64,000 nucleotides of DNA from Scyliorhinus canicula (taxonomy: Eukaryota): NCBI RefSeq assembly GCF_902713615.1, contig NC_052151.1, forward strand, positions 125,053,927 to 125,117,926, read 5' to 3'. A program made the position numbers and the translations under genes. Of the stretch, positions 6,486 to 62,700 are shown piece by piece (position 1 is the first letter of the stretch; each line of letters begins with the position of its first letter). The notes under the pieces were generated by a model, which saw only the letters and a list, made by a program, of their open reading frames with translations, ran no database searches and had not been told where the DNA came from.

Positions 6486-6830
6486 GGCAGCACGGTAGCA
6501 TTGTGGATAGCACAATTGCTTCACAGCTCCAGGGTCCCAGGTTCGAATCTGGCTTGGGTCACTGTCTGTGCGGAGTCTGCACATCCTCCCCGTGTGTGCG
6601 TGGGTTTCCTCCGGGTGCTCCGGTTTCCTCCCACAGTCCAAAGATGTGCAGGTTAGGTGGATTGGCCATGATAAATTGCCCTTAGTGTCCAAAATTGCCC
6701 TTAGTGTTGGGTGGGGTTACTGGGTTATGGGGCTAGGGTGGAGGTGTTGACCTTGGGTAGGGTGCTCTTTCCAGGAGCCGGTGCAGACTCGATGGGCCGA
6801 ATGGCCTCCTTCTGCACTGTAAATTCTATG
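6486..6830 (+). mobile_element. HE1/V-SINE, CR1-type tail
   Basis: Full head, V-domain and TTCTATG tail; flanking repeat TATGTTAA; nearly identical to the reverse-strand copy at 45575-45920. Confidence 0.92.
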
Positions 6831-8019
6831 TTAACATTTGTTGTGGAACACAGTAGATGCAAACTGCCTCACAGAGTGTGTACATTTCGAGAGGCATTCA
6901 TTTCCACTATGGCATTTGATCTCCCATGGTATGCATGTGTAACGATAACAGTTGATGTTGTAACTGAGCGGGAAGGTCCCAGAATGGAAACCTGGCTCAA
7001 AAAACTGTTACTTTTCTTTATAATACATTATAAGGAGTTACAGGAGCGTTAATTAGTTGTATCAGCAAGAAAAAACATTTATTAACATGGAAAAATTGGA
7101 TTGTAATACAATACTTTACTCCCCCCTCAACTTCACAGTTACACAGATTTTAATTGTGTAATTAACACGAGTGGCAAAGCATATCTTAAGCTACAGCGGT
7201 CTCCGTGACCAACGTCTATTTAAACGCACATTTATAGCTGTGGTCAAATCCAAGTTAATGTCTATGGATTTCTCCTCCGAGTTCCCCCCAGATGATTGTC
7301 ATGAGATTTTTCGAACATCATTCCAGAAGCACACTTTAAAATCTGCTCTCACAATAATGGTTTCCCTTTGTGGTTTGTGTTACGAAATCCAGTCCAGGTT
7401 TTCCAAATGACACCTTTTAAAGAAAGTGTCCACTCCACTTTGAGTAGGGAATCCAGTATCCAACTTTTACACCACGCCCTTTAGGATTTTTTTTGTCTTG
7501 GCTGCTGTACGAACTGTCCTCAATTGCTTCAATTCTCGATTAATAGTCTCTAGTAAAATGGCATCAAACATTTCATTTACCTGAAGTCTGCTGTCCCACT
7601 TTAAATTCGATTACTGCAATAGTTTCTTTATGTCAGATGTTTACTCTTCCTTGAATTCTTTAGTTAAATACCTTGGTCCCTGGTTATCTGGACTGTAACT
7701 TATTTGTTAGGAAGCCTACATCTTTGCAACTCCCTTACCTACCCATCTTCTCCTGGAAATGTTGAGAGATGTTCATTCCCCAGTGTCCTGTCTCCAACTG
7801 CAATTTTTCCAGCTAAAACTGAACCTTATAAGGGCTCCCGTTGCTGAGCAATAACTACTACTATTTATTCTTCACACCGTAGTCTTCACACCACAGCCTT
7901 CACAACACAGCCTTCACACTATATCCCAATAGAATCACAATTGGAACTTTACCAACTTCCACACATGCATGCACCTTTTCCCAGCATGAATTTAACTATT
8001 TGTTTTACCCTTCCAGACA

Positions 8020-9430: not shown

Positions 9431-10549
9431 CAATGAACAATTAAAAAAATATATACTTACAAAAATGGCAGGTTTTGTAATAACTATCAAGGGGTAAGTG
9501 AAAGAGCAGCATGTAGTGGGAACTTGCTTGGGAGATACACTTATTTGCTGCTGTAACTTTAGCAAACCTCAAACAAGTGCTGAAGCTATGACAACCAATT
9601 GGGAAAACCAGTTAAGAAGTTCATTGGCCTTGGGATTTTTACAGCTTCAGTACCTATTACAAATGTATCTTCAATCATGTTCCTAATCAACATACCCTCA
9701 TTCGTTCTGACTGCAGCACGAAAAGCTCGAAATGACAAGGCAATTTCCCAAAGTAGGAATAGCTAGTCTATTTATTGCACCATTATAAACAATTACACAC
9801 ATTTGAGTGGGTGCCAGTTTAACAGATTCAATGGCAGGAAACTAGATAATTGACAATGGTCAGGAGAATGTGGAGTTGGCATTAGCTGGTTAAATATAGT
9901 TCCTGTCCCTGTGTTGCACTTTGCTGGGCACTCCAGCTTCATATACATTATTTGAGCGGGAAAAAAATCTGTAAAGCCCTGAGGAAAGCTGAAAGGAACA
10001 GGCTGAACAGTAAAGTAATGGAAGAGTGGGAAGAGAGCACAGGCTGTGCCCAGAACAACTGATTAAAGCTGTGGTTAGCCTTATTGTCCAACGAGCGTAA
10101 TACCAATTCTTGACTTGAGCTCTGAAAGCCCAGCTATTCTTGGGATGTGATGCTGTGTTTTCAGTCCCATTCGGAAATCTCAGAGGCTATTTACGACATT
10201 ACAACTAGATATTCAGGTGATGCTCTGCACAATCGTAATGGAGCCATGAGTTTCATGGGAAAGGTTTGGGGATGTGGTATGATGTTGGGGTAGTTGAGGT
10301 AGGTGAGTATATAAACAGTGCTTGTGGGGATCATTGGCAGCTGGTGATGGCCAGGGACATTGAAACTCAAAGTTATCAATTTCTAAAGAAAATGTTCGTA
10401 CTTATTGCTTCCCTTGACGATGTACAAATATTTTCTGGGAAGCCCTTAAGGGATGGCGTTCACTGTTCACCTCATCTACAGTTTCCCAGGGATTTTTCAC
10501 AGGCTCATAAGAGGACAATTGCAGTGTTTGATTTCTGACCCAAGGTTTT

Positions 10550-10890
10550 CATAGATTTCATAGAATTTACAGTGCAGAAGGAGGCCATTTGGCCTATAGA
10601 ATCTGCACCGGCCCTTGGAACGAGCACCCTACCCAAGCCCACACCCCACCAAATCCTTGTAATCCAGCAACCCCACCCAAGCTTTTTTGGACACTCAATT
10701 TAGCATGGCTAATCCACCTAACCTGCACATCTTTGGACTGTGGCAGGAAACCGGAGCACCCGGAGAAAACCCACGCAGACCACGGGGAGAACGTGCAGAT
10801 TCCGCACAGAAAGTGACCCAAGCGGGAATCAAACCTGAGATGCTGGAGCTGTGAAGCAACTGTGCTAACCACTGTGCTACCGTGCTGTCC
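10550..10890 (-). mobile_element. HE1/V-SINE
   Basis: Reverse-strand head, V-domain and CR1-type tail (catagatttcatagaa). Confidence 0.9.
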
Positions 10891-15909: not shown

Positions 15910-16100
15910 TGAAATGAAAAATGAAATGAAAAATGAAATGAAAATCGCTTATTGTCACGAGTAGGCTTCAAATGAAGTTACTGTGAAAAGCCCCTAGTCG
16001 CCACATTCCGGCGCCTGTTTGGGGAGGCTGGGACGGGAATCGAACCGTGCTGTTGGTCTGCTTTAAAAGCCAGCGATTTAGCTGAGTGAGCTAAACCAGC
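15910..16100 (-). mobile_element. Short tRNA-derived SINE with (TTTCA)n tail
   Basis: Minus strand GCTGGTTTAGCTCA...GGTTCGATTCCC...GGCGCCGGAATGTGGCGACTAGGGG...(ATTTC)n. Confidence 0.88.
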
Positions 16101-17490: not shown

Positions 17491-18151
17491 GGGCGGGATT
17501 CTCTCAACCGGTGCCGGGCCGGAGAATTCCCGTGACCGGCGCGAATCACGCCACGCCGGCACGTGATTCTCGGCAGAGCGGAGAATCGCCGCCTGCGTGG
17601 TTGGCGTGGCGCTGGTTGTGGGCCGCTCTACATGGCCAGCCCGCAGATTCTCGGCCCGGGATGGGCTGAGCGGCCGTAGTGAAAACGTTGAGTCCAACCG
17701 GCGCCGTCCACACCTGCTCTCAGCCGACGGGAACTCGGAGTCAAAGGTGTGGGGGAGGAGGGGGGGTCCGACCCCGGGGTGGGGGGCCTCCGATGTGGCC
17801 TGGCCTGCGATCGGGGCGCACCGATCGGCGGCCGGCCTCTCTGGCTGGGGGCTTCGTTTCTTCCACGTCGGTCCCTGTAGCCCTGCGCCATGTTGTATCG
17901 GGGCCGGTGCATTGAAGGAAGGCACTGCACGTGCGCGCATTGGCGCTGATGCCACTGCACATGTGCGGATCCCGCGGCGCCCAGTTCAAGCCGGGATCAG
18001 CAGCTGGAGTGGCGCGAACCGCTCCAGTGCCGTGCTGGCCCGTTTTGTGGGCCAGAATTAGGTGTGGGGTTGGCCCGTTCATGCCGCCGTTAAATGCGAC
18101 GGCGTTTACGATGGTGTGGACACTCTTCTGCGGGATTAGAGAATCCCGCTC
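17491..18151. mobile_element. Harbinger-like MITE, 3-bp TSD CAT
   Basis: TIR GGGCGGGATTCTC / GAGAATCCCGCTC; CAT on both sides; inverted homolog of 32308-32970. Confidence 0.8.
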
Positions 18152-18658
18152 CATGTGTTTTTCAGTCTGGGCTAGTGCCTATTGGTTGCCTGGGAAGTCC
18201 CTGAGAAGTTAAAGTTCTTTGCAGCCTGCAGAGAGAATTTGTTTTTTTTAGCTTGGGGAGATGAGGTCATTACTGGGTAGAGCCAAGGAAAGCAGAGAGA
18301 CATTTTGAGAAGCTGTGGAGAGAGGTTTGAAGAAAGGCTTTTGGAAGTGAAGTCTGATCTGACAACCTTTCCTTGTTGTTGGGTCACATGTAAAGGCAGT
18401 TCTCTTTCCCAGTAGGATAGTTTAAAGAAAGAGTGATAATATTTTAAAAGCAGAGCAGTCATGTCTGAAGAGAAGGACGAAACTGAAACAAGCTCGTTGA
18501 AGCAGCTATTTGAAGATATTCAGCCAGAGTTTGAAGGAGTTCTAACAGCAGCCAGAATCTGTTCTGTACTGCAAGTATTACTCCATGCCTTGCTGATTTT
18601 TACGCTGGATTGCGAGCTGTGTGTTTCTTTTCTGGTTGTTTATTGGGAAATGGAGCAG

Positions 18659-19004
18659 TAGAACATAGAACAGTACAGCACAGAACAGGCCCTTCGGCCC
18701 TCAATGTTGTGCCGAGCCATGATCACCCTACTCAAACCCACGTATCCACCCTATACCCGTAACCCAACAACCCCACCCTTAACCTTACACTTTTATTAGG
18801 ACACTACGGGCAATTTAGCATAGCCAATCCACCTAACCCGCACATCTTTGGACGTGGGAGGAAACTGGAGCACCCAGAGGAAACCCACGCACACAGGGGG
18901 AGGACGTGCAGACTCTACACAGACAGTGACCCAGCCGGGAATCGAACCTGGGACCCTGGAGCTGTGAAGCATTTATGCTAACCACCATGCTACCATGCTG
19001 CCCC
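18659..19004 (-). mobile_element. HE1/V-SINE with CR1-type tail, directly downstream of tRNA-Ala
   Basis: tRNA-like head GGGGCAGCATGGTAGC...GGTTCGATTCC; V-domain GTGGGTTTCCTC...GCAGGTTAGGTGGATTGGC-type core; tail GAGGGCCGAAGGGCCTGTTCTGTGCTGTACTGTTCTATGTTCTA resembles the CR1 3' end at 43690-43750. Confidence 0.92.
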
Positions 19005-19009
19005 GAAAG

Positions 19010-19081
19010 TGGAGATGCCGGGGATTGAACCCGGGGCCTCATACATGCAAAGCATGCGCTCTACCACTGAGCTACATCCCC
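19010..19081 (-). tRNA. tRNA-Ala(TGC), intact 72 nt, probably a retroposed copy fused to a SINE
   Basis: Minus strand GGGGATGTAGCTCAGTGGTAGAGCGCATGCTTTGCATGTATGAGGCCCCGGGTTCAATCCCCGGCATCTCCA: full cloverleaf, G3:U70 Ala identity pair, anticodon TGC, A and B boxes. Confidence 0.95.
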
Positions 19082-19959
19082 GTAGAGTAGAGTTAAGGGA
19101 TAATTGTAAGCTGTTCTTTGTTTGGTGCAAAGTATAAAAATGAATGATATTGTAGTTACAATAAAGTTTTGTTTTAAAAAATAACCAAGACCTATTTCAT
19201 CATGCAATCACTCCTACAGCAAATCATTCTTTCCGCACAGTCTTTCAAATTAACTAACCTTTGGGGTTTCGGTCCAGTATCCTAGCCACTGTTGGGGTCT
19301 AACCCGGGATCGTGATATATCTGATTAGAAATTGCTGAATTAGGATAATGATATAATGGGTCAAATGGACTATTTCTGTCCTGTTTGCTTCCATGTACTT
19401 GAGAAGGAAAATAAACAGAGTTCGGGGCTAATTGGAAACTTCTCACAAAGAACCTGCGGAGGTTGGATGGATTGAATGGCCTCCCTCTGTGCTATAATTT
19501 ACTTTGATTATTGAAGTGATGATAAACAGGGATACTTACTGATGTGAACTGTTGCATATTTGGTTAATGTCAAATGTGAAGGAGGGCCAGCAAGGATTAA
19601 TAAATATTGTGTGCTTGAATAAAGGAAAGCACTCCTGTGGATTTGCAGTACATCTCTTTTTGACTGGATAGAGTGTTAGTACGGTACTTAATGTGCAGAG
19701 TACACAAACTCTGGCTGCTTGCCCTGCTGTACTGTCAGAGAAATGACTGTGTTCAGCCCACAACAAGTTGATGTATGCCCCACTATAGACTGGTTTGATT
19801 TAGTGAGCTTCTCTAAAATACTAAGCAGTTCTCAATGTGGCAAATAATTCATCTCGCAAGTGATTCTCTTCCTAGTTTATTTCTGCTTCTCAGGAATAAT
19901 GGATTTATTTTGTTAAATTTGACAGTTGGTGTAATATTAGTAAGGCAATAGTAAATAGT

Positions 19960-31197: not shown

Positions 31198-31585
31198 CAG
31201 GGGTGGGCAAACTTTTCCGTGCAAGGGCCACATTCAGAAATTCACAATTCACAAAGGGCCGCATAGTATATTAAGTAAAATAATTACTTCACCCGGTTAT
31301 GATTCTGGGCGCCTCATATAGAACATAGAACAGTACAGCACAGAACAGGCCCTTCGGCCCTCGACGTTGTGCCGAGCAATGATCACCCTACTCAAGTCAA
31401 CGTATCCACCCTATACCAGTAAGTAACCCAACAGTCCCCCCCCATTAACATTAAAAAAAAATTAAAAAAAAAAAAAAAAAAAATTTTTAAAAAAAAATTT
31501 TTTTTTTTTTTAATGACTTGGTGGGCCGCAGAAATACCTTTGGCAGGCCGCATGCGGCCCGCGGGCCGTAGTTTGCCCACCCCTG
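31198..31585. mobile_element. hAT (Charlie/MER58-like) MITE, 8-bp TSD TCTTAAAG, carrying a SINE tail fragment
   Basis: Perfect 16-bp TIR CAGGGGTGGGCAAACT / AGTTTGCCCACCCCTG; TSD at 31190-31197 and 31586-31593. Confidence 0.92.
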
Positions 31586-32307: not shown

Positions 32308-32970
32308 GGGCGGGATTCTCCAATCCTGTGGCAGAGTGTCCACGCCGTCGTAAACACCGTCGCGTTTTACGACGGCGTGAATGGGCCGCTGCGAGGGCTA
32401 ACTCTGGCCCCTACAGGGGGCCAGTATGGCGCTGGAGCGGTTCGTGCTGCTCCAGCTGCCGGTCCCGGCACGAACTGTGCAGCGCGGGATCCGCGCATGC
32501 GCGGGTGCGCCGGTGCCAACACGCACATGCGCACTGGCCTCCTTCAATGCGCCGGCCCCGACACAACATGGCACAGGGCTACAGGGGCCGGCACGTAGGA
32601 AAGGAGCCCCAGCCAGAGAGGCCGGCCCGCTGATCGGTGGGCCCCATTTGCGGGCCAGGCCACATTGGAGGTCCCCCCCCCCCCCCCCCCCCCCCCCACA
32701 GGCCGCCCCCTGACCCTTCCACGCCGGGTTCCCGCCGGCTGAGAGCAGGTTAGAACAGCGGCGGAGGGACTTTGTTTTTTTTCACGGCCACTCGGCCCAT
32801 TCGGGCCGGAGAATCGGCGGGCTGACCATGCAGAGTGGCCCGCAACCGGCGCCCCGCCAACCAAGCCTGCGCCAATGGCGCTCTGCGGAGAATAGTGTGT
32901 CGGCGTCGGGCCGGCGTGGCCTGGTCGCGGGGATTGTCCGGCCAGGCTCAGGGCTGGGAGAATCCCGCCC
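32308..32970. mobile_element. Harbinger-like MITE, TSD TCT
   Basis: Perfect TIR GGGCGGGATTCTCC / GGAGAATCCCGCCC; TCT on both sides. Confidence 0.85.
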
Positions 32971-34109: not shown

Positions 34110-36075
34110 GACAAAGAACAAAGAAAAATACAGCACAGGAACAAGCCCTTCAGCCCTCCAAGCCTGTACCGGTGATGATACCAACCTTGGCCAAATCCTC
34201 AGCACTTACTAATGCTGTATCCCTCTATACACATCTTATCCATGTATTTGTCGAGATGCCTTTTGAACGTCATTAATGCTTTTACAACATACCCTGGCAG
34301 TGCATTGCAGGCACTCAACACCCTCTGTAAAATAACCTGCCTCGCACATTTCCTCTAAACTTTACCCCACGGACCTTAATCCTATGCTCCCTGGTGACTG
34401 ACCCCTCCACCCTGGGAAAGAGTGCCTGCCTATCCAAACTATCCATGCCTCTTATAATCTTGTAGCCCTCTATCAGGTCGCCCCTCAACCTCCGTAGTTC
34501 TAATGAAAACAGTTCCAGTCTATTCAGCCTCTCTGCATAGCTAACACCCTACAGACCAGGCAAGATCCTGGTTAACCTCCTCTGCATCCTCTCCAAAGCC
34601 TCCATCTCCTTCTGGTAGTGTGATGACCAGAATTGAGTGCAATATTCCAAGTCCTGCCTCACCAAGTTTCTATACAACTGTAGCATGACTTGCCAGTTTT
34701 TATACTCAATGCCTCAATGCCCCGTAACAGCCTTCCCGAACAGGCGCTGGACTGTGGCGACTAGGGGCTTTTCACAGTAACTTCATTTGGAGCCTACTCA
34801 TGACAATAAGCGATTTTCATTTTTCATTTCATTTCATCCCATGAAGGCAAGCATTCCGTATACTTTCTTGACTACCTTGTCCACTTGTGTTGCCACTTTT
34901 GAAGATCTGTGGACAGCACTCCCAGATCTCTCTGACTTTCTATATTCCCAAGAGTTTTGCCATTTACTGTATATTTCCCCTCTATGTTAGACCTATCAAA
35001 ATGCATTACCTCACATTTGTCGGGATTAAACTCCATTTGCCATTTCTTTGTCCAAGTCTCCAACCTATCTATGTCCTGCTGTATCCTCTGACAATTCTCC
35101 ACACTAACTCCCACTCCACCAACCTTGGTGTCATCCGTGAACTTGTTTATGTATTCTACAGACAACAGAGGCTTCAGCACCGATCCCTGTAGGACACCAC
35201 TAGCCACAACCTTCCATTCAGAAAAACACCCTTCTACTGCTACCCTTTGCCTTCTGTGATCGAGCCAGTTCTGTATCCATCTTTCCACCTCACCTCTGAT
35301 CCTGTGTGACTTCACCTTTTGTACCAGTCTGCCATGAAGCACCTTGTCAAAGGCTTTACTGATGTCCATGTAAACAACACCCATCGTCCTCCCCTCATCA
35401 ATCATCTTTGTCACCTCCTCAAAAAACTCAGTCAGGTTACTGAGGCAAGACCTCCCCTTCACAAGACCATGCTGTCTATCGCTAATGGATCCAGTTGCTT
35501 CCAAATGGGTATAAATCCTGTCCTGAGAATTCTCTCCAATAATTTACACCGCTGTGAGGCTCACCAGCCTATAGTTTCCAGGATTATCCCTACTACCTTT
35601 CTTAAACAGTGGTACCACATTAACTATTCTCCAGCCCTCTGGGAGCTCACCTGTAGCCAATGAGGATACAAAGATGTCAGTCAAGGCCCCAGCAATTTCC
35701 TCCCATGATTTCTTCAGTATTCTAGGGTAAATCCCATTAGGCACAGGAGACTTATCTACCTTAATGCTTTTTAAAATACCCAATACCTCCTTTTTGATGG
35801 CAACATGGCCCAGACTATCCACACACCCTACCCCACCCTAGCCACAAAGTCCTTTTGTTTAATGCAAAGTACCCATTTAGTACCTTGCCCATTTCCTCAG
35901 GCTTAAGACATAGATACCCCACTGTCCTTAAATGGCCAAATCCTTTCCCAGGCTACCCTCTTGCTTTTTACATATGAATAAAAAGCTTTGGGATTCACAT
36001 TAATCCTACTTGCCAAGGATGTTTCATGACTCCTCCTAGCCCTCCTAATTTCCTGCTTAAGTACCTTCCTACTTT
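34110..36075 (-). mobile_element. 5'-truncated CR1 LINE (RT region and 3' UTR), frameshifted
   Basis: ORFs 35544-35822 and 34872-35504: DKSP...PGNYRLVSLT, QHGLVKGRSCL, DISKAFDKV, SGVLQGSVL, KFTDDTK; tail at 34110. Confidence 0.92.
34721..34837 (+). mobile_element. Truncated (TTTCA)n-tailed SINE inserted in the CR1
   Basis: GTGGCGACTAGGGGCTTTTCACAGTAACTTCATTTG...GATTTTCATTTTTCATTTCA. Confidence 0.8.
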
Positions 36076-38397: not shown

Positions 38398-38603
38398 ATA
38401 TGAAATGAAATGAAAAATGAAATGAATGAAATGAAAATCGCTTATTGCCACAACTGGCTTCAAATGAAGTTACTGTGAAAAGCCCCGAGTCGCCACATTC
38501 CGGCGCCTGTTTGGGGAGGCTGGTACGGGAATTGAACCATGCTGCTGGCCTGCCTTGGTCTGCTTTCAAAGCCAGTGATTTAGCCCTGTGCTAAACCAGC
38601 CCC
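38398..38603 (-). mobile_element. Short SINE with (TTTCA)n tail
   Basis: Same family as 15910-16100. Confidence 0.88.
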
Positions 38604-41600
38604 TATAAATTTAGGGTACCCAATTAATTTTTTTCAATTAAGGGGCAATTTAGCGTGTTCAATCCACCTACCTTGCACATCTTTGGGTTGTGGGGGTGAC
38701 GCATAATCAATGGACACGAAATGTAGATAAAGTTCGAACGATAGGCTTTAATACACAAGAAGTGTGCCCGGCAGCAGACGTACAGAAGAATGGCAGACTG
38801 CCGGGGAACACGGGCTTTTATACCCCACCTCGTAGGTGGAGCTACCTACCTCTCAGCCAATCGGCTGAGAGGCACATGACATACCTGGGCCAATGGGCAG
38901 CGAGTCCTCTGCACCAATGGCAGCTCACACTTCCAGGTACCGTAATACCCCTAGTCATACTACCACATTCACCCCCTGTTGAGAAAGGAACTGGCGGGGG
39001 GTGGGAGGATACGGGAAACGCGGACATGGGGGAGGGGGTGCGTGTCCCGTGAGTACGTGAGAGACTGGTAGTATGACTAGAGATATTAGGTCGTACCATT
39101 GCAGTGATGGCTGCCCACTGGCCCGCAATTACGTTCAAAATACAACAAAACTATGTACAGTGTGTAAAAACTGGGGTGGGGGGGGGGGGAATGGAGAATA
39201 GACAAGGGAAAACAAGAGTCCATCAGCAGGTCACATGGATTCGATCAGCCGATCGGATGCCTTGGATGTCCTGTTTGACCTGCGTAGCTGTGCCGGCGAC
39301 GTTGGAGTGGTGCTCGTCCGTGCGTCCCGGAGCGATGATCCTGTTCTTGCATCCGTACCACTAGTCGGAGCTAGCGGGGGCCAAGCCGGGGGAGGGTCGT
39401 CCTGTCCGCTGGGCCGTGGGTGTGTAGGTGTCAGTGGGGCCGGGAAGGGGGCGCTTGCTGGGGGTAGTGGGGGTTGGGGGATGTTGGCGCCGGGGGGTGT
39501 GGCCGGGATCCGGCGGGTGCCATGTCCTGAAGGGAGACCGTGTCCTGTCGGCCGTCGGGATACTCCACGTACGTGTATTGCGGGTTTGCGTGGAGTAGCT
39601 GGAGTTCGACCAACGGGTCCGACTTGTGCACCCGCACGTGCTTCCGGAGCAGGCTGGGCCCGGGGGTAGCCAACAAGGTCGGGAGCGGGGTCCCTGAGGA
39701 AGACTTCCTGGGGAAAACAATAAGGCGTTCGTGAGGCGTTCGGTTAGTGGAGGTACAGAGGAGTGACCGGATAGATTGGAGGGCGTCTGGGAGGACCTCT
39801 AGCCAGTGGGAGACTGGGGGATTTCTGGACCGCAGGGCCTGTAGGACGGTCTTCCAGTTTGTACTGTTTTCCCTCTCGACCTGTCCATTACCTCGGGGAT
39901 TGTAACTGGTCGCCCTGCTGGAGCGATGCCCCTGCTGAGCAGGAACTGACGCAGCTCGTCACTCATAAAGGAGGACCCCCTATCGCTGTGAATGTAAGCG
40001 GGGAATCCGAACAGGGAGAAAATGGTGTGTAGCGCTTTAATGATGGTGGCTGTGGTCATGTCAGGACAGGGGATGGCGAAGGGGAAGCGGGAGTACTTGT
40101 CAATCACGTTGAGGAAGTACGTGTTGCGGTTGTTGGAGGGGAGGGGACCTTTGAAGTCCATGCTGAGACGTTCAAAGGAGCGGGAAGCCTTTATAAGATG
40201 TGCTTGTTTGGGGCGGTAGAAGTGCGGCATGCACTCCGCGCAGATGTGGCATTCCGTGGTCACTGTCCTGACCTCCTCGATAGAGTAGGGCAGGTTGCGG
40301 GTCTTTATAAAATGGAAAAAGCAGGTGACTCCCGGGTGGCAGAGGTCCGCATGGAGGGTTTGGAGGCGGTCCACTTGTGCGTTGGCACAGGTACCGCGGG
40401 ACAGGGCATCGGGAGGCTCCCAGGACGATCCAAGATGTCATAGTTGTAGGTGGACAGTTCTATCCTCCACCGCAAGATTTTGTCGTTCTTTATCTTGCCC
40501 CTCTGTGCGTTTTCGAACATGAAGGCCACTGACCATTGGTCTGTGAGGAGGGTGAACCTCCTGCCGGCCAGATAGTGCCTCCAATGTCGCACAGCTTCTA
40601 CTATGGACTGTGCTTCCTTTTCAACCGAGGAGTGTCGGATTTCGGAAGCGTGGAGGGTACGTGAGAAGAAGACCACAGGTCTGCCTGCTTGGTTGAGGGT
40701 GGCCGCCAGAGCTACATCGAATGCGTCGCTCTCGATTTGGAAGGGGAGGGACTCGTCGATAGCGCGCATCGTGGCCGTTGCAATATCTGCTTTGATGAGG
40801 CTAAAGGCCTGGCGGGCCTCCATCGACAGGGGAAAGGTGGTTGATTGGATGAGTCCGTGAGGCTTAAGGTCTCTCTCTCTAAAAGTCTTTGGCGGATCTG
40901 CGAAGATTGCATATCCGCAACGAAAGCGTCTCTGATCAAAAGTTTGGTGTGCTCGGCAGCGGAAACTTGTGGGCAGCCGCAGTTTCTCCCCAGAATGAGG
41001 AGAGCCCGGTAAAATTCATCTAGGGACTCACCAGGAAGTTGCTGCCTCGTGGCCAGTAAGTGCCGAGTGTAGACCTGGTTCACCGGCCGTATGAAATGTC
41101 CTTTAAGCAAGTCCATGGCCGCGTCGTAGTCTGTCGTGTCCTCTATGAGCGTGTATACCGCGGTGCCGACGCACGAGTGGAGGATGTGCAATTTCTGTTT
41201 CCTCGTCGGGACGTTTTCGGCTGTACTCAAGTAGCTATTGAAGCAAGCCAGCCAGTGTTTAAATGCTGCAGTTGAATTTGCTGTGTGCGGGCTGAGTCGA
41301 AGACACTCCGGCTTGATGCGAAGCTCCATCCTTTAAAATCTTGTGTATTAAATTGACGCACAATCAATTGACACGAAACGTAGATAAAGTCCGAATGATA
41401 GGCTTTAATACACGAGAAGTGTGCCCGGCAGCAGATGTACAGAAGAATGGCAGACTGCCGGGGAACACGGGCTCTTATACCCCACCTCGTAGGCGGAGCT
41501 ACCTACCTCTCAGCCAATCAGCTGAGAGGCACATGACATACCTGGGCCAATGGGCAGTGCGTCCTCTGCACTAATGGCAGCTCACGCTTCCAGGTACCGT

Positions 41601-41754: not shown

Positions 41755-42032
41755 TAGAGAGAGGGGGCGAAGGGGAAAGGCCCAACAACAAAGGAGGGGC
41801 ACCGCTCATGTGTAAGTAACAAATAACTAACCATTGTACAGTGAAGGGCACAGGAAAGGACCCTCAAACAGTGAGGGGTGTGTGGTCGGGTGGGGGGGAG
41901 CGCGCCGACACTAAGGAAATCAATATGTACGTAGTAATCAGCACAGTCCTTACTGCTTGTATAGTGCACCATATGTAAAAACTTCAATAAAAACATTTCA
42001 AAAAACAAAATGGCTTCCAGTTGCTGAACAAT

Positions 42033-43750
42033 ACTTTTCGTCAGTATTCACTCAAGAATACTGACTTTTCGTCAGTATTCACTCAAGAAAAAGATAATAT
42101 TGTGGAGGAGAATGCTGAGACCCAGGCTATTAGAATAGATGGCATTGAGGTGCGTAGGGAAGAATTGTGGGCAATTCTGGACAAGGTGAAAATAGATAAG
42201 TCCCCGGGGCCGGATGGGATTTATCCTAGGATTCTCTGGGAAGCCAGGGAAGAGATTGCTGAGCCTTTGGCTTTGATTTTTAGGTCATCATTGGCTACAG
42301 GAATAGTGCCAGAGGACTGGAGGATAGCAAATGTGGTCCCTTTGTTCAAGAAGGTGAGTAGAGATAACCCCGGTAACTATAGGCCGGTGAGCCTAACGTC
42401 TGTGGTGGGTAAGGTCTTGAAGAGGATTATAAAAGATACGATTTATAATCATCTAGATAGGAATAATATGATTAGGGATAGTCAGCATGGTTTTGTGAAG
42501 GGTAGGTCATGCCTCACAAACCTTATCGAGTTCTTTGAGAAGGTGACTGAACAGGTAGACGAGGGTAGAACTGTTGATGTGGTGTATATGGATTTCAGTA
42601 AAGCGTTTGATAAGGTTCCCCACGGTCGTCTATTGCAGAAAATACGGAGGCTGGGGATTGAGGGTGATTTAGAGACGTGGATCAGAAATTGGCTAGTTGA
42701 AAGAAGACAGAGAGTGGTAGTTGATGGGAAATGTTCAGAATTGGAGTTCAGTTACGAGTGGCGTACCACAAGGATCTGTTCTGGGACCGTTGCTGTTTGT
42801 CATTTTGATAAATGACCTAGAGGAGGGCGCAGAAGGATGGGTGAGTAAATTTGCAGACGACACTAAAGTCGGTGGAGTTGTAGACAGTGTGGAAGTATGT
42901 TGCAGGTTACAGAGGGACATAGATAAGCTGCAGAGCTGGGCTGAGAGGTGGCAAATGGAGTATAATGTGGAGAAGTGTGAGGTGATTCACTTTGGAAAGA
43001 ATAACAGGAATGCGGCATATTTGGCTAATGGTAAAATTCTTGGTAGTGTGGATGAGCAAAGGGATCTCGGTGTCCATGTACATAGATCCCTGAAAGTTGC
43101 CACCCAGGTTGATAGGGTTGTGAAGAAGGCCTATGGTGTGTTGGCCTTTATTGGTAGAGGGATTGAGTTCCGGAGCCATGAGGTCATGTTGCAGTTGTAC
43201 AAAACTCTAGTACGGCCGCATTTGGAGTATTGCGTACAGTTCTGGTCGCCTCATTATAGGAAGGACGTGGAAGCTTTGGAACGGGTGCAGAGGAGATTTA
43301 CCAGGATGTTGCCTGGTATGGAGGGAAATTCTTATGAGGAAAGGCTGATGGACTTGAGGTTGTTTTCGTTAGAGAGTAGAAGGTTAAGAGGTGACTTAAT
43401 AGAGGCATACAAAATGATCAGAGGGTTAGATAGGGTGGACAGCGAGAGCCTTCTCCCGCGGATGGAGGTGGCTAGCACAAGGGGACATAGCCTTAAATTG
43501 AGGGGTAATAGATATAGGACAGAGGTCAGAGGTGGGTTTTTTACGCAAAGAGTGGTGAGGCCGTGGAATGCCCTACCTGCAACAGTAGTGAACTCGCAAC
43601 ATTGAGGGCATTTAAAAATTTATTGGATAAGCATATGGATGATAAGGGCATAGTGTAGGTTCGATGGCCTTTAGTTTTTTTTCCATGTCGGTGCAACATC
43701 GAGGGCCGAAGGGCCTGTACTGCGCTGTATCCTTCTATGTTCTATGTTCT
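42033..43750 (+). mobile_element. 5'-truncated CR1 (HER1-like) LINE, young, one frameshift near 42730
   Basis: ORFs 42021-42815 and 42721-43605 with RT motifs DFSKAFDKVPH, SGVPQGSVLGP, KFADDTK; (TTCTATG)n tail; probable TSD AATAC at 42030-42034 and 43751-43755. Confidence 0.96.
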
Positions 43751-45555: not shown

Positions 45556-45574
45556 TATCACCTTGTTTAAGAGT

Positions 45575-45920
45575 TCATAGAATTTACAGTGCAGAAGGAG
45601 GCCATTTGGCCCATCGATTCTGCACCGGCTCTTGGAAAGAGCACCCTAGCCAAGGTCAACACCTCCACCCTATCCCATAATCCAGTAACCCCACCCAACA
45701 CTAAGGGCAATTTTGGACACTAAGGGCAATTTATCATGGCCAATCCACCTAACCTGCACATCTTTGGACTGTGGGAGGAAACCGGAGCACCCGGAGGAAA
45801 CTCACGCACACACAGGGAGGATGTGCAGACTCCGCACAGACAGTGACCCAAGCCGGAATCGAACCTGGGACCCTGGAGCTGTGAAGCAATTGTGCTATCC
45901 ACAATGCTACCATGCTGCCC
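45575..45920 (-). mobile_element. HE1/V-SINE (young subfamily)
   Basis: Near-identical reverse complement of 6486-6830. Confidence 0.92.
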
Positions 45921-54398: not shown

Positions 54399-54577
54399 TA
54401 TAATAATAATAATTGCTTATTGTCACAAGTAGGCTTCAATGAAGTTACTGTGAAAAGCCCCTAGTCGCCACATTCCGGCGCCTGTTCGGGGAGGCCGGTA
54501 CGGGAATTAAACCCGTGCTGCTGGCCTTGTTCTGCATTACAAGCCAGCTGTACAGCCCACTGTGCTAAACCAGCCCC
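54399..54577 (-). mobile_element. Short SINE, (ATT)n tail variant
   Basis: Same head and tail type as 15910-16100. Confidence 0.88.
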
Positions 54578-58181: not shown

Positions 58182-58690
58182 GGGCGGCACGGTATCACAG
58201 TGGTTAGCACTGAGGCTTCACAGCGCCAGGGACCCGCGTTCGATTCCTGGCTTGGGTCACTGTCTGTGTGGAGTCTGCACGTTCTCCCTGTGTCTGTGTG
58301 GGTTTCCTCCGGGTGCTCCAGTTTCCTCCCATAAGTCCTGAATGAAATGAAATGAAAATCGCTTATTGTCACGAGTAGGCTTCAATGAAGTTACTGTGAA
58401 AAGCCCCTAGTCGCCACATTCCGGCGCCTGCCCGGGAGGCTGATACGGGAATCGAACCGTGCTGCTGGCCTGCTTGGTCTGCTTTAAAAGCCAGCGATTT
58501 AGCCCAGTGAGCTAAAGCAGCCCCTAGTTGGCCCCTAGTGCTTGTTAGGTGAATTGGACATTCTGAATTCTCCCTCAGTGTACCTGAACAGGTGCAGGAG
58601 TGACGCAACTAGGGGATTTTCACAGTAACTTCATTGCAGTGTTAATGTAAGGCTACTTGTGACAATAATAATGATTATTATTATTTTGAT
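58182..58690 (+). mobile_element. V-SINE with (ATT)n tail, interrupted by a minus-strand short SINE (58340-58524)
   Basis: Host stops at cataagtcctgaa and resumes at gtgcttgttaggtgaattggacattctg. Confidence 0.88.
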
Positions 58691-59745: not shown

Positions 59746-62700
59746 TGATGAGACCATCAATTCAAGCGACACGTGGTTAGAAGTGAACAGTGGTTTTAAT
59801 CGTCTTACAACAGAGCCTGCCTGTGATGAGATGAACTCTAGATGAACTGGCAGGCAGGCTCCGACTGCCAAGCTTTATGCAACCAGTGGGGGGGAGGAGT
59901 CATGGGCGGAGCCAAGGGTGGAGCCCAGTACAAACTTCCGTACATCCCCAGTACACCTCCCCCTAGGTGCAGAGCCGCGCAACTGCTCGTGTGCCGAGCT
60001 TACACAGGCATGGTACAACATGTGTGATAACAGTGTGAATTATGCTATTATGATTCACCACATTCACACCCTGTAAAAAAATCAAGTCCGGCGGGGGTGA
60101 TGGTTTACAGATTGAGCCTGTCCGGTGATCGAGTTGTCCGTTGTGATCGGCGGAGCACCGGGGTTGCAGTCTCTTCTGGTGGCTGGATGATCACGGTCGG
60201 TTGGGGTACGATGGTGGACTCCGTGGGTGATTCTGTCTGAGCTTCGTACCCATCTGGTTAGACTAGGGAGTGGGGGTGCTGGGAGCTTGCGGGTGTGGGC
60301 GCGTGAACGTGCGTAGCAAACTGGTAGGCGCTGCAAGTTGGGTGGGATGTAGTGTGAGGGGTACCTCGGCGGTGGTAGTGGTGGGGTTTGATCCTGCAGG
60401 CGCCAGGTCCCGGAGGGATACGGTGTCCTGACGGCCGTCAGGGTACTCTATGAAGGCGTATTGGGGGTTCGAGTGTAGTAGGTGTAGTAGGAGCACTTTT
60501 TCCACAAGCGGGTCAGTTTTGTGTGCCCTGACGTGCTTCCTGAGGAGCACTGGGCCTGGTGTCTTCAACCATCCCGGGAGCGAAACCCCGGTGGTAGTAC
60601 CCCTGGAAAAGACGAAGAGCCGCTCGTGAGGGGTCTGATTGGTAGCGGTACACAAGAGGGACCAAATAGCGTGGAGCGCGTCTGGGAGGACTTGTTGCCA
60701 ATGGGAGATCGGGAGATTCCTGGACCGGAGGGTCAGTAGGACGGTCTTCCAGACCGTTGCATTCTCCCTCTGCACCTGCCCGTTGTGCATGAGTCACAGA
60801 AGGTTGGTTTACAAGTGCAACAGGTGATTAAGAAGGCAAATGGAATTTTGTCCTTCATTGCTAGAGGGATGGAGTTTAAGACTAGGGAGGTTATGTTGCA
60901 ATTGTATAAGGTGTTAGTGCGGCCACACCTGGAGTATTGTGTTCAGTTTTGGTCTCCTTACTTGAGAAAGGACGTACTGGCGCTGGAGGGTGTGCAGAGG
61001 AGATTCACTAGGTTAATCCCAGAGCTGAAGGGGTTGGATTATGAGGAGAGGTTGAGTAGACTGGGACTGTACTCGTTGGAATTTAGAAGGATGAGGGGGG
61101 ATCTTATAGAAACATTTAAAATTATGAAGGGAATAGATAGGATAGATGCGGGCAGGTTGTTTCCACTGGCGGGTGACAGCAGAACTAGGGGGCATAGCCT
61201 CAAAATAAGGGGAAGTAGATTTAGGACTGAGTTTAGGAGGAACTTCTTCACCCAAAGGGTTGTGAATCTATGGAATTCCTTGCCCAGTGAAGCAGTTGAG
61301 GCTCCTTCATTACATGTTTTTAAGGTAAAGATAGATAGTTTTTTGACGAATAAAGGGATTAAGGGTTATGGTGTTCGGGCCGGAAAGTGGAGCTGAGTCC
61401 ACAAAAGATCAGCCATGATCTAATTGAGTGGCGGAGCAGGCTCGAGGGGCCAGATGGCCTACTCCTGCTCCTAGTTCTTATGTTCCCCCTGGGGTTATAG
61501 CTGGTAGTCCTGCTCGAGGCGATGCCCTTGTCGTGCAGGTACTGACGCAGCTCGTCGCTCATGAAGGACGAACCCCGGTCGCTGTGTACATAGCTGGGGA
61601 AACCAAACAGGGTGAAGATACTATGCAGGGCCCTGATGACTGTGTGGGAAGTCATGTCGGGGCACGGGATAGCAAAAGGGAATCGGGAGAACTCGTCGAT
61701 GACATTTAGTAAGTACACATTCTGGTTAGTCGAGGGGAGTGGCCCTTTGAAATCAATTGCGAGGCATTCAAAGGGCCAAGAAGCCTTGATCAGGTGGGCC
61801 CTGTCTGGTCTATAGAAGTGCGGTTTGCACTCCGCGCAGATCGGGCAATCCCTGGTGACGGCTTTTACCTCCTCGGTGGAGAAAGGCAGATTTTGGGCTT
61901 TATTGTAGTTGGCGAGCTGGGTGACCCCCGGGTGGCAGAGGTCATGTGGATGGCTTTTAAGCGGTCGCTCTGCGTGCTGGCGCACGTGCCACGGGACAGG
62001 GCATCTGGGGGCTCGTTGAGCTTCCCCAGTCGATACATAATATCGTATTTGTAGGTGGAGAGCTCGATCCTCCATCTCAGAATTTTATCATTTTTAATTT
62101 TGCCCCTTTGCGAGTTGTCAAACATGAAGGCAACCAATCTTTGGTCGGTGATGAGGGTGAACCTTCTACCTGCGAGGTAGTGCCTCCAGTGACGAATAGC
62201 CTCCACAATGGCTTGTGCTTCCTTTTCGACCGAGGAGTGTCAAAGTTCCGAAGCGGAGAGGGTTCGGGAGAAAAATGCGACTGGTCTCCCTGTCTGATTT
62301 AGTGTGGCTGCAAGAGCTACCTCTGAGGCATCGCTCTCATCCTGGAAAGGGACGGATTCATCCACCGCCCGCATGACCGCTTTGGCGATGTCCTCCTTGA
62401 TGCAGTTGAAGGCCTGAAGGGCCTCAGCTGACAGGGGAAATAGTGTGGCCTTAAAGAGTGGGCGGGCTTTGTCCGCATATTGAGGGACCCACTGGGCATA
62501 ATATGAAAAGAACCCGAGGCACCGTTTGAGGGCCCTGGGACAATGAGGGAGTTCTAAGAGTCCGGGTCGGGGCCCAGGACTCCGTTTTCCATGACATAGC
62601 CGAGGATGGCTAGTCTGGTTGTGCGGAAAACGCATTTCTCCTTGTTGTACGTGAGATTAAGCTTCTGGGCCGTCTGGAGAAATCGATTGAGGTTGGCATC

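Follow-up and report, generated by a model that had tools for sequence, protein, structure and literature searches.

An intact tRNA-Ala joined to a complete SINE in the shark Scyliorhinus canicula: a possible template-switch retrocopy

Chimeric retrocopies and SINEs that have been re-headed or made dimeric are already known kinds of sequence. Template switching during L1 retrotransposition has produced chimeras of L1 with tRNA, U6 and Alu (bioRxiv 10.1101/2025.02.02.635956). In the mammalian U6/L1, U1 or U2/Alu and tRNA/L1 chimeras, one target duplication bounds the whole, and the 3' partner provides the sequence that the enzyme recognises. The reported tRNA/L1 chimeras carry mostly antisense tRNA halves. 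For enzymes of the CR1 clade, two related cases have been described. The bird family PittSINE is proposed to have arisen when a CR1 enzyme switched from TguSINE1 RNA to tRNA-Asp (PMC5729268), and in SINEU an snRNA was added to the 5' side of CR1-mobilised SINEs, an addition that was called common and was attributed to a template switch (PMC4494074). In sharks and rays, the SINE HE1 belongs to the V-SINE superfamily and has HER1, a LINE of the CR1 clade, as its partner (PMC3747384, PMC4824008); the superfamily is defined by a central domain of about 80 bp that is homologous to the consensus (PMC4824008).

Here we analyzed a stretch of 64,000 nucleotides from the shark Scyliorhinus canicula (contig NC_052151.1, positions 125,053,927 to 125,117,926), referred to below as the window, in which a tRNA-Ala, a short linker and a SINE with a LINE-type tail follow one another. 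The tRNA-Ala and the SINE share their orientation on the minus strand, and the 3' partner is complete. As in the mammalian chimeras, a small Pol III or snRNA sequence stands in sense orientation on the 5' side and the 3' partner brings the part recognised by the enzyme. The shark unit differs from them: its LINE is presumed to be of the CR1-type, 'stringent' kind and not L1, a complete SINE takes the place of the truncated L1 on the 3' side, and poly(A) is lacking. Its tRNA is full-length, in sense and followed by a trailer, in contrast to the antisense halves of most tRNA/L1 chimeras, and the target duplication that would bound it is putative and only about 5 bp long. With PittSINE the unit shares the proposed mechanism and the enzyme clade, that is, a switch from SINE RNA to tRNA during target-primed reverse transcription; in PittSINE, however, the old head gave way to the new tRNA and the product was amplified into a family, whereas the old head is retained in the shark unit and a single copy has been seen. 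SINEU and the composite SINEs are likewise CR1-mobilised SINEs with a small-RNA sequence joined on at the 5' side, but they are multi-copy families with master genes, in contrast to the one observed copy with a pristine tRNA described here. Finally, the shark SINE resembles the HE1/HER1 pair in its tRNA-related head, its conserved central block and a tail common to a LINE in the same genome, a comparison made by structure and description. In the literature that we searched, no shark case was reported in which a CR1-type enzyme had fused a full-length pre-tRNA with a complete SINE. We read the locus as a one-off chimeric retrocopy formed by a template switch from SINE RNA to pre-tRNA-Ala, and we put the probability of this reading at roughly 0.45.

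The 5' part of the unit is a canonical tRNA. ARAGORN called a tRNA-Ala with the anticodon TGC, that is tRNA-Ala(UGC), over 72 nt at 19010-19081 on the minus strand, and the Rfam model RF00005 matched it over the full model length with 70.1 bits (E 3e-13; gathering score 29). All pairs in the stems are standard, and none was flagged as non-standard by the Rfam model. In the acceptor stem, the 5' strand GGGGATG pairs with CATCTCC, which is followed by A, so that G3:U70 and the discriminator A73 can be read from the sequence. The G3:U70 pair and A73 are identity elements of tRNA-Ala. The B box is GGTTCAATCC. No CCA is encoded 3' of A73, where the sequence continues with CTTTC. The sequence-only reading had described an intact, perfect tRNA-Ala(TGC) without an added CCA, and both descriptions stand, the cloverleaf being intact. 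Nucleotides 1-31 of the tRNA-Ala are identical to a human small RNA in PMC8706231, which fits a strong conservation of tRNA-Ala; this human small RNA was the only match in a literature search with strings from the tRNA and the SINE, and no SINE sequence was retrieved. Within the 64 kb window the tRNA-Ala is the sole tRNA above the gathering score, and in a permissive Rfam scan the SINE heads reached at most 26 bits. The distance between these scores and the 70.1 bits of the tRNA-Ala indicates that the 5' part of the unit is a true tRNA and not a SINE head. Folding did not contribute further. The tRNA with linker and SINE head gave a z value of -0.9 against shuffles and the tail gave -0.5, neither of them better than the shuffles, and the minimum-energy fold of the tRNA, linker and SINE head breaks the cloverleaf, which renders the folding uninformative.

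A separate tRNA-like block occurs in four copies that are 78-84% alike, at 54489-54576 (-), 58434-58523 (-), 38492-38600 and 16000-16100. Two of the four drew oversized ARAGORN calls, as tRNA-Tyr and tRNA-Phe, with Rfam scores of at most 26 bits. These blocks do not look like tRNA genes, but rather like pieces of a second SINE family, its heads or other parts.

The SINE was delimited by BLAST and by alignment with the other copies in the window. It is a full-length element of the HE1 type (V-SINE-like), 345 nt long, at 18659-19003 on the minus strand, and its tRNA-related head, in which A and B boxes are present, is followed by a central domain common to other copies and by a LINE-type tail. 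The head, taken as the first 70 nt, contains the B box GGTTCGATTCC and the A-box-like TAGCATGGTGG and aligns with the heads of other copies; it falls below the Rfam tRNA threshold, as expected of a derived head. The central block, which includes 18850-18888, is conserved among the window copies. The 5' end lies at 19003/19004, where the start GGGCAGCA matches that of seven other copies in the window, or a one-base variant of it. Judged by this common start, the SINE lacks none of its 5' bases. Of the earlier description as a complete HE1/V-SINE, the completeness is borne out by the 345 nt and the shared 5' end; the name HE1 is one that we presume from structure.

The SINE tail ends in TGTTCTA repeats, with the terminal bases ...TGTTCTATGTTCTA at 18659. 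A candidate for the partner family was found by Pfam RVT_1 and tail alignment at 42021-43744 on the plus strand. It is a decayed non-LTR retrotransposon (LINE) in which two frameshifted reverse-transcriptase ORFs span 42021-43605 (RVT_1 E values of 3e-19 and 8e-12), and directly behind these ORFs its 3' end, 57 nt at 43688-43744, is 86% identical to the SINE tail. Since the matching segment lies behind the reverse-transcriptase ORFs, the tail is common to the SINE and a LINE within the window. The same tail subtype is carried by a 135-nt SINE fragment at 31319-31453 (-), which is 87% identical to the 3' third of the SINE. The ending TGTTCTATGTTCTA is common to the SINE at 18659, the fragment at 31319 (-) and the LINE at 43744 (+). 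The tail had been called CR1-type before; its sharing with a LINE that bears a reverse transcriptase is seen in the window, and its assignment to the CR1 clade is presumed, after the literature on HE1 and HER1.

Two decayed 3' halves of non-LTR retrotransposons are present in all, at 42021-43744 (+) and 34115-35504 (-), both with RVT_1 frames and TGTTCTA-type tails. The SINE tails themselves fall into at least two subtypes, one ending in ...GGGCCGAAGGGCCTGTTCTGTGCTGTACTGTTCTA and the other in ...GGGCCGAATGGCCTCCTTCTGCACTGTAAATTCTATG, as seen by comparing 18659-18760 (-) with 45570-45700 (-), 6760-6840 (+) and 10540-10620 (-). The comparison suggests that one SINE body has had LINEs of two lineages as partners. 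The SINE joined to the tRNA has a tail subtype that differs from that of the commonest copies in the window, and no second full-length SINE copy with the same tail subtype was found there.

What lies between the two parts? The linker, at 19004-19009 on the minus strand, was defined from the sequence and from a comparison with the 5' ends of other SINE copies. It is CTTTC or CTTTCG, that is 5 or 6 nt, and the bases that follow CTTTC are GGGGCAGCATGG. The end of the linker is ambiguous because the seven other SINE copies start with GGGCAGCA after a variable base, and the final G of CTTTCG may be SINE base 1 instead of linker. The 5-nt spacer CTTTC of the sequence-only reading is therefore present, with 5 or 6 nt as its length by comparison with the seven SINE 5' ends. 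We read the linker, from its bases, as the 3' trailer of a pre-tRNA that ends in U's, with one or two further bases where it meets the SINE; a C followed by TTT after the tRNA, instead of CCA, is the form of a Pol III primary transcript. A Pol III terminator of at least four T's is absent near the tRNA-Ala, the linker having TTT only. On the minus strand the first T4 is found at 18449, which is 633 nt past tRNA +1, and only TTT runs precede it, in agreement with what had been stated before on the missing terminator. Removing the SINE from the sequence does not affect this absence on the minus strand as far as 18449. A resident working tRNA gene at this place would hence be terminator-less with or without the SINE. 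As the locus now stands, two predicted Pol III promoters lie in tandem without a nearby terminator.

A single event of target-primed reverse transcription would account for this anatomy. The anatomy is observed, whereas the single event, the switch and the stage to which the tRNA had been processed are inferred from it. The reverse transcriptase of a CR1-type partner LINE, of the HER1 kind, would prime on the tail of the SINE RNA and copy this RNA fully to its 5' end. It would then jump to a nascent transcript of tRNA-Ala(UGC), entering it at the 3' end. From this transcript RNase P would already have removed the leader, while a short, U-ended 3' trailer bound by La was still in place. A pre-tRNA with a processed 5' end and a retained trailer is a normal La-bound intermediate. 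The enzyme would continue along the tRNA-Ala template and stop at tRNA +1, and the joined cDNA would integrate at a site with microhomology to the SINE tail repeat, with a target duplication of at most 5 bp, or of 6 bp together with a 4-nt leader. With the SINE complete on this side, the joint coincides exactly with the 5' end of the SINE RNA, which is what an end-to-end jump predicts.

If the unit was inserted as a whole, a target-site duplication is expected to flank it. The pentamer TCTAC, which reads GTAGA on the plus strand, lies directly against tRNA +1 and again at the end of the SINE tail. Its putative 5' copy lies at 19082-19086 (-) and is preceded by a second TCTAC (CTCTACTCTAC); the putative 3' copy, at 18658-18662 (-), was assigned by tail comparison, and both copies were evaluated statistically. 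Under strict adjacency, the chance of a 5-base match is about 1 in 1000 per position. The 3' copy, however, consists but for one base of TCTA (18662-18659), an ordinary tail end, and only this one base is certainly flank. With four of the five duplicated bases belonging to the tail's own terminal repeat, the target duplication is ambiguous. In a relaxed test for a repeat around the whole unit, 7% of random genomic 15-mers matched the 3' junction no worse than the actual upstream flank (p ~0.07); TCTACT is the best of the relaxed matches for this flank, and with it the tRNA would keep a 4-nt leader, CTAC. Another SINE copy, c6486, has a clear duplication, TATGTTAA, that likewise overlaps the tail repeat. 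Targets with microhomology to the tail seem, judging from these bases, to be typical of the SINE family, and the TCTAC before the tRNA fits this pattern. Both copies of the GTAGA duplication proposed earlier are thus present, and as a duplication it is weak. That the unit was retroposed in one event is plausible and is the reading that we favor: the complete SINE, a trailer rather than CCA, the missing terminator and the abutting repeat speak for it, and the weakness of the duplication counts against it.

A competing repeat would point to another history. Three nucleotides after the tail, at 18644-18654 (-), lies CTCCATTTCC (relaxed test, p ~0.02). It is part of a gapped repeat, CTCCA(C)TTTC, with the SINE alone between its two copies, CTCCACTTTC in the tRNA 3' end and linker against CTCCATTTC behind the tail, and 1.8% of random genomic 15-mers equal it in the relaxed test. 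The sequence of the window is compatible with either set of boundaries. The repeat around the SINE alone would fit two events, in which a SINE was inserted 5-6 bases behind a tRNA-Ala copy, be it a gene or a pseudogene of older date, that was already resident at the site. The SINE would have come to this place by chance or through a short T run that served as a favoured nick site; CR1-type elements are not known to target tRNA genes. We consider this history unlikely. Besides the gapped repeat, it is favored by the weakness of the duplication around the whole unit and by the density of SINEs. About 13 SINE 5' ends occur in the 64 kb window, and at this density a given tRNA has a chance of about 1 in 1000 of being followed within 10 nt by the start of a SINE in its own orientation. 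On the assumption of about 1000 tRNA genes, chance adjacency is expected in roughly one case per genome, and a lone case could be chance. The same figure also speaks against two events, as they would produce such a neighborhood just about once in the genome. In addition, the repeat around the SINE alone needs an indel and a 3-nt filler, yet the adjacent 72-nt tRNA shows no evident decay, and a resident gene would have been without a T4 terminator within 633 nt.

The flanks themselves were also searched within the window. The sequence-only reading had placed the unit inside LTR-like sequence. No LTR-like repeat structure was found around the locus in the window, the flanks have no second copy or paralogue there, and a reconstructed empty site had no match in the window either, so that this part of the reading is not upheld. 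Fragments of LTR-retrotransposon pol with RNase H and integrase core domains do occur at 39799-41329 (-) and 61359-62075 (-); they lie far from the tRNA-SINE unit, to whose flanks they are unrelated. The window also contains a GC-rich repeat of about 660 bp, at 17491-18149 and 32310-32970, as an inverted pair of 76% identity with long open frames that overlap on both strands.

The template switch at this locus has to be weighed as well against an origin elsewhere in the genome. The mechanism put forward before was a source locus, in which a SINE had landed in the terminator of a tRNA-Ala gene and the read-through transcript was retroposed repeatedly. A dimeric family would be the equivalent; in effect, this would be a young dimeric SINE with a tRNA-Ala head, and the locus studied here would be a daughter copy. 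The start at tRNA +1, the trailer-like linker, the full SINE and the tail are equally compatible with such an origin, and dimeric and re-headed SINEs are known (PMC5729268, PMC4494074). A sequencing run from a related organism contained 0.49 of the sampled words of the unit and less than 0.05 of those of the flank, a difference which shows that near-identical SINE copies are abundant and that the present copy is near its subfamily. In runs of a second organism, 0.10-0.13 of the words of the flank were present. Against a source locus, a tRNA precedes none of the about 12 other SINE copies in the 64 kb window, and the scheme needs two rare steps, whereas a template switch needs one. With no second copy of the junction among these, the read-through mechanism found no backing here, and we regard a source locus or dimeric family as improbable, more so than the insertion of a SINE behind a resident tRNA. 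The further proposals of the sequence-only reading, that functional tRNA genes would be spread in this way and that RNase Z could free the two parts, are speculative.

The joint was also sought beyond the window. The pattern of a tRNA 3' end, a gap of at most 12 nt and the SINE start gave six matches in metagenome and prokaryote collections, all of them in GC-rich bacterial coding sequence; neither tRNA nor SINE is present in the six, and they are chance matches. The open frame across the tRNA-SINE joint, when translated and searched in a protein collection, gave no candidates.

Could the joint have been created by the assembly? Both parts are multi-copy, and the T-arm regions of the tRNA-Ala and the SINE head are alike at about 16 of 19 bases, so a tRNA-Ala gene and a SINE might have been joined through these similar sequences. 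The joint, however, lies outside the similar stretch, after a complete tRNA and before a complete SINE. Runs from a second sample of the same organism, from another study, contained 0.63-0.66 of the words of the unit and 0.53-0.62 of those of the flank. An artefact of this kind is very improbable.

The one-off template switch remains the reading that we favor, and the tRNA-SINE joint is most likely an accident of a known kind and not a new mobile element. A broader form of it is possible, if doubtful: in the lineage of this shark, a CR1-type enzyme might recurrently jump from HE1-type SINE RNA to nascent pre-tRNAs and so scatter intact, promoter-bearing tRNA sequences with many different specificities over the genome. 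From the products of such jumps, a new tRNA gene that works or a dimeric SINE could occasionally arise, and the present locus would be the case with tRNA-Ala.

Taken alone, the locus is one more chimeric retrocopy and leaves the knowledge of SINE biology unchanged. CR1-type enzymes are thought to be template-strict and to make few retrocopies. If the reading as a single event is true, the locus preserves a template-jump product of a CR1-type reverse transcriptase, and its joint would reveal a tRNA intermediate that was caught with the leader gone and the trailer still on. Should fusions of this kind prove frequent in sharks, they would form a natural record of how SINEs acquire new heads, and tRNA genes could also be copied to other places in this way.
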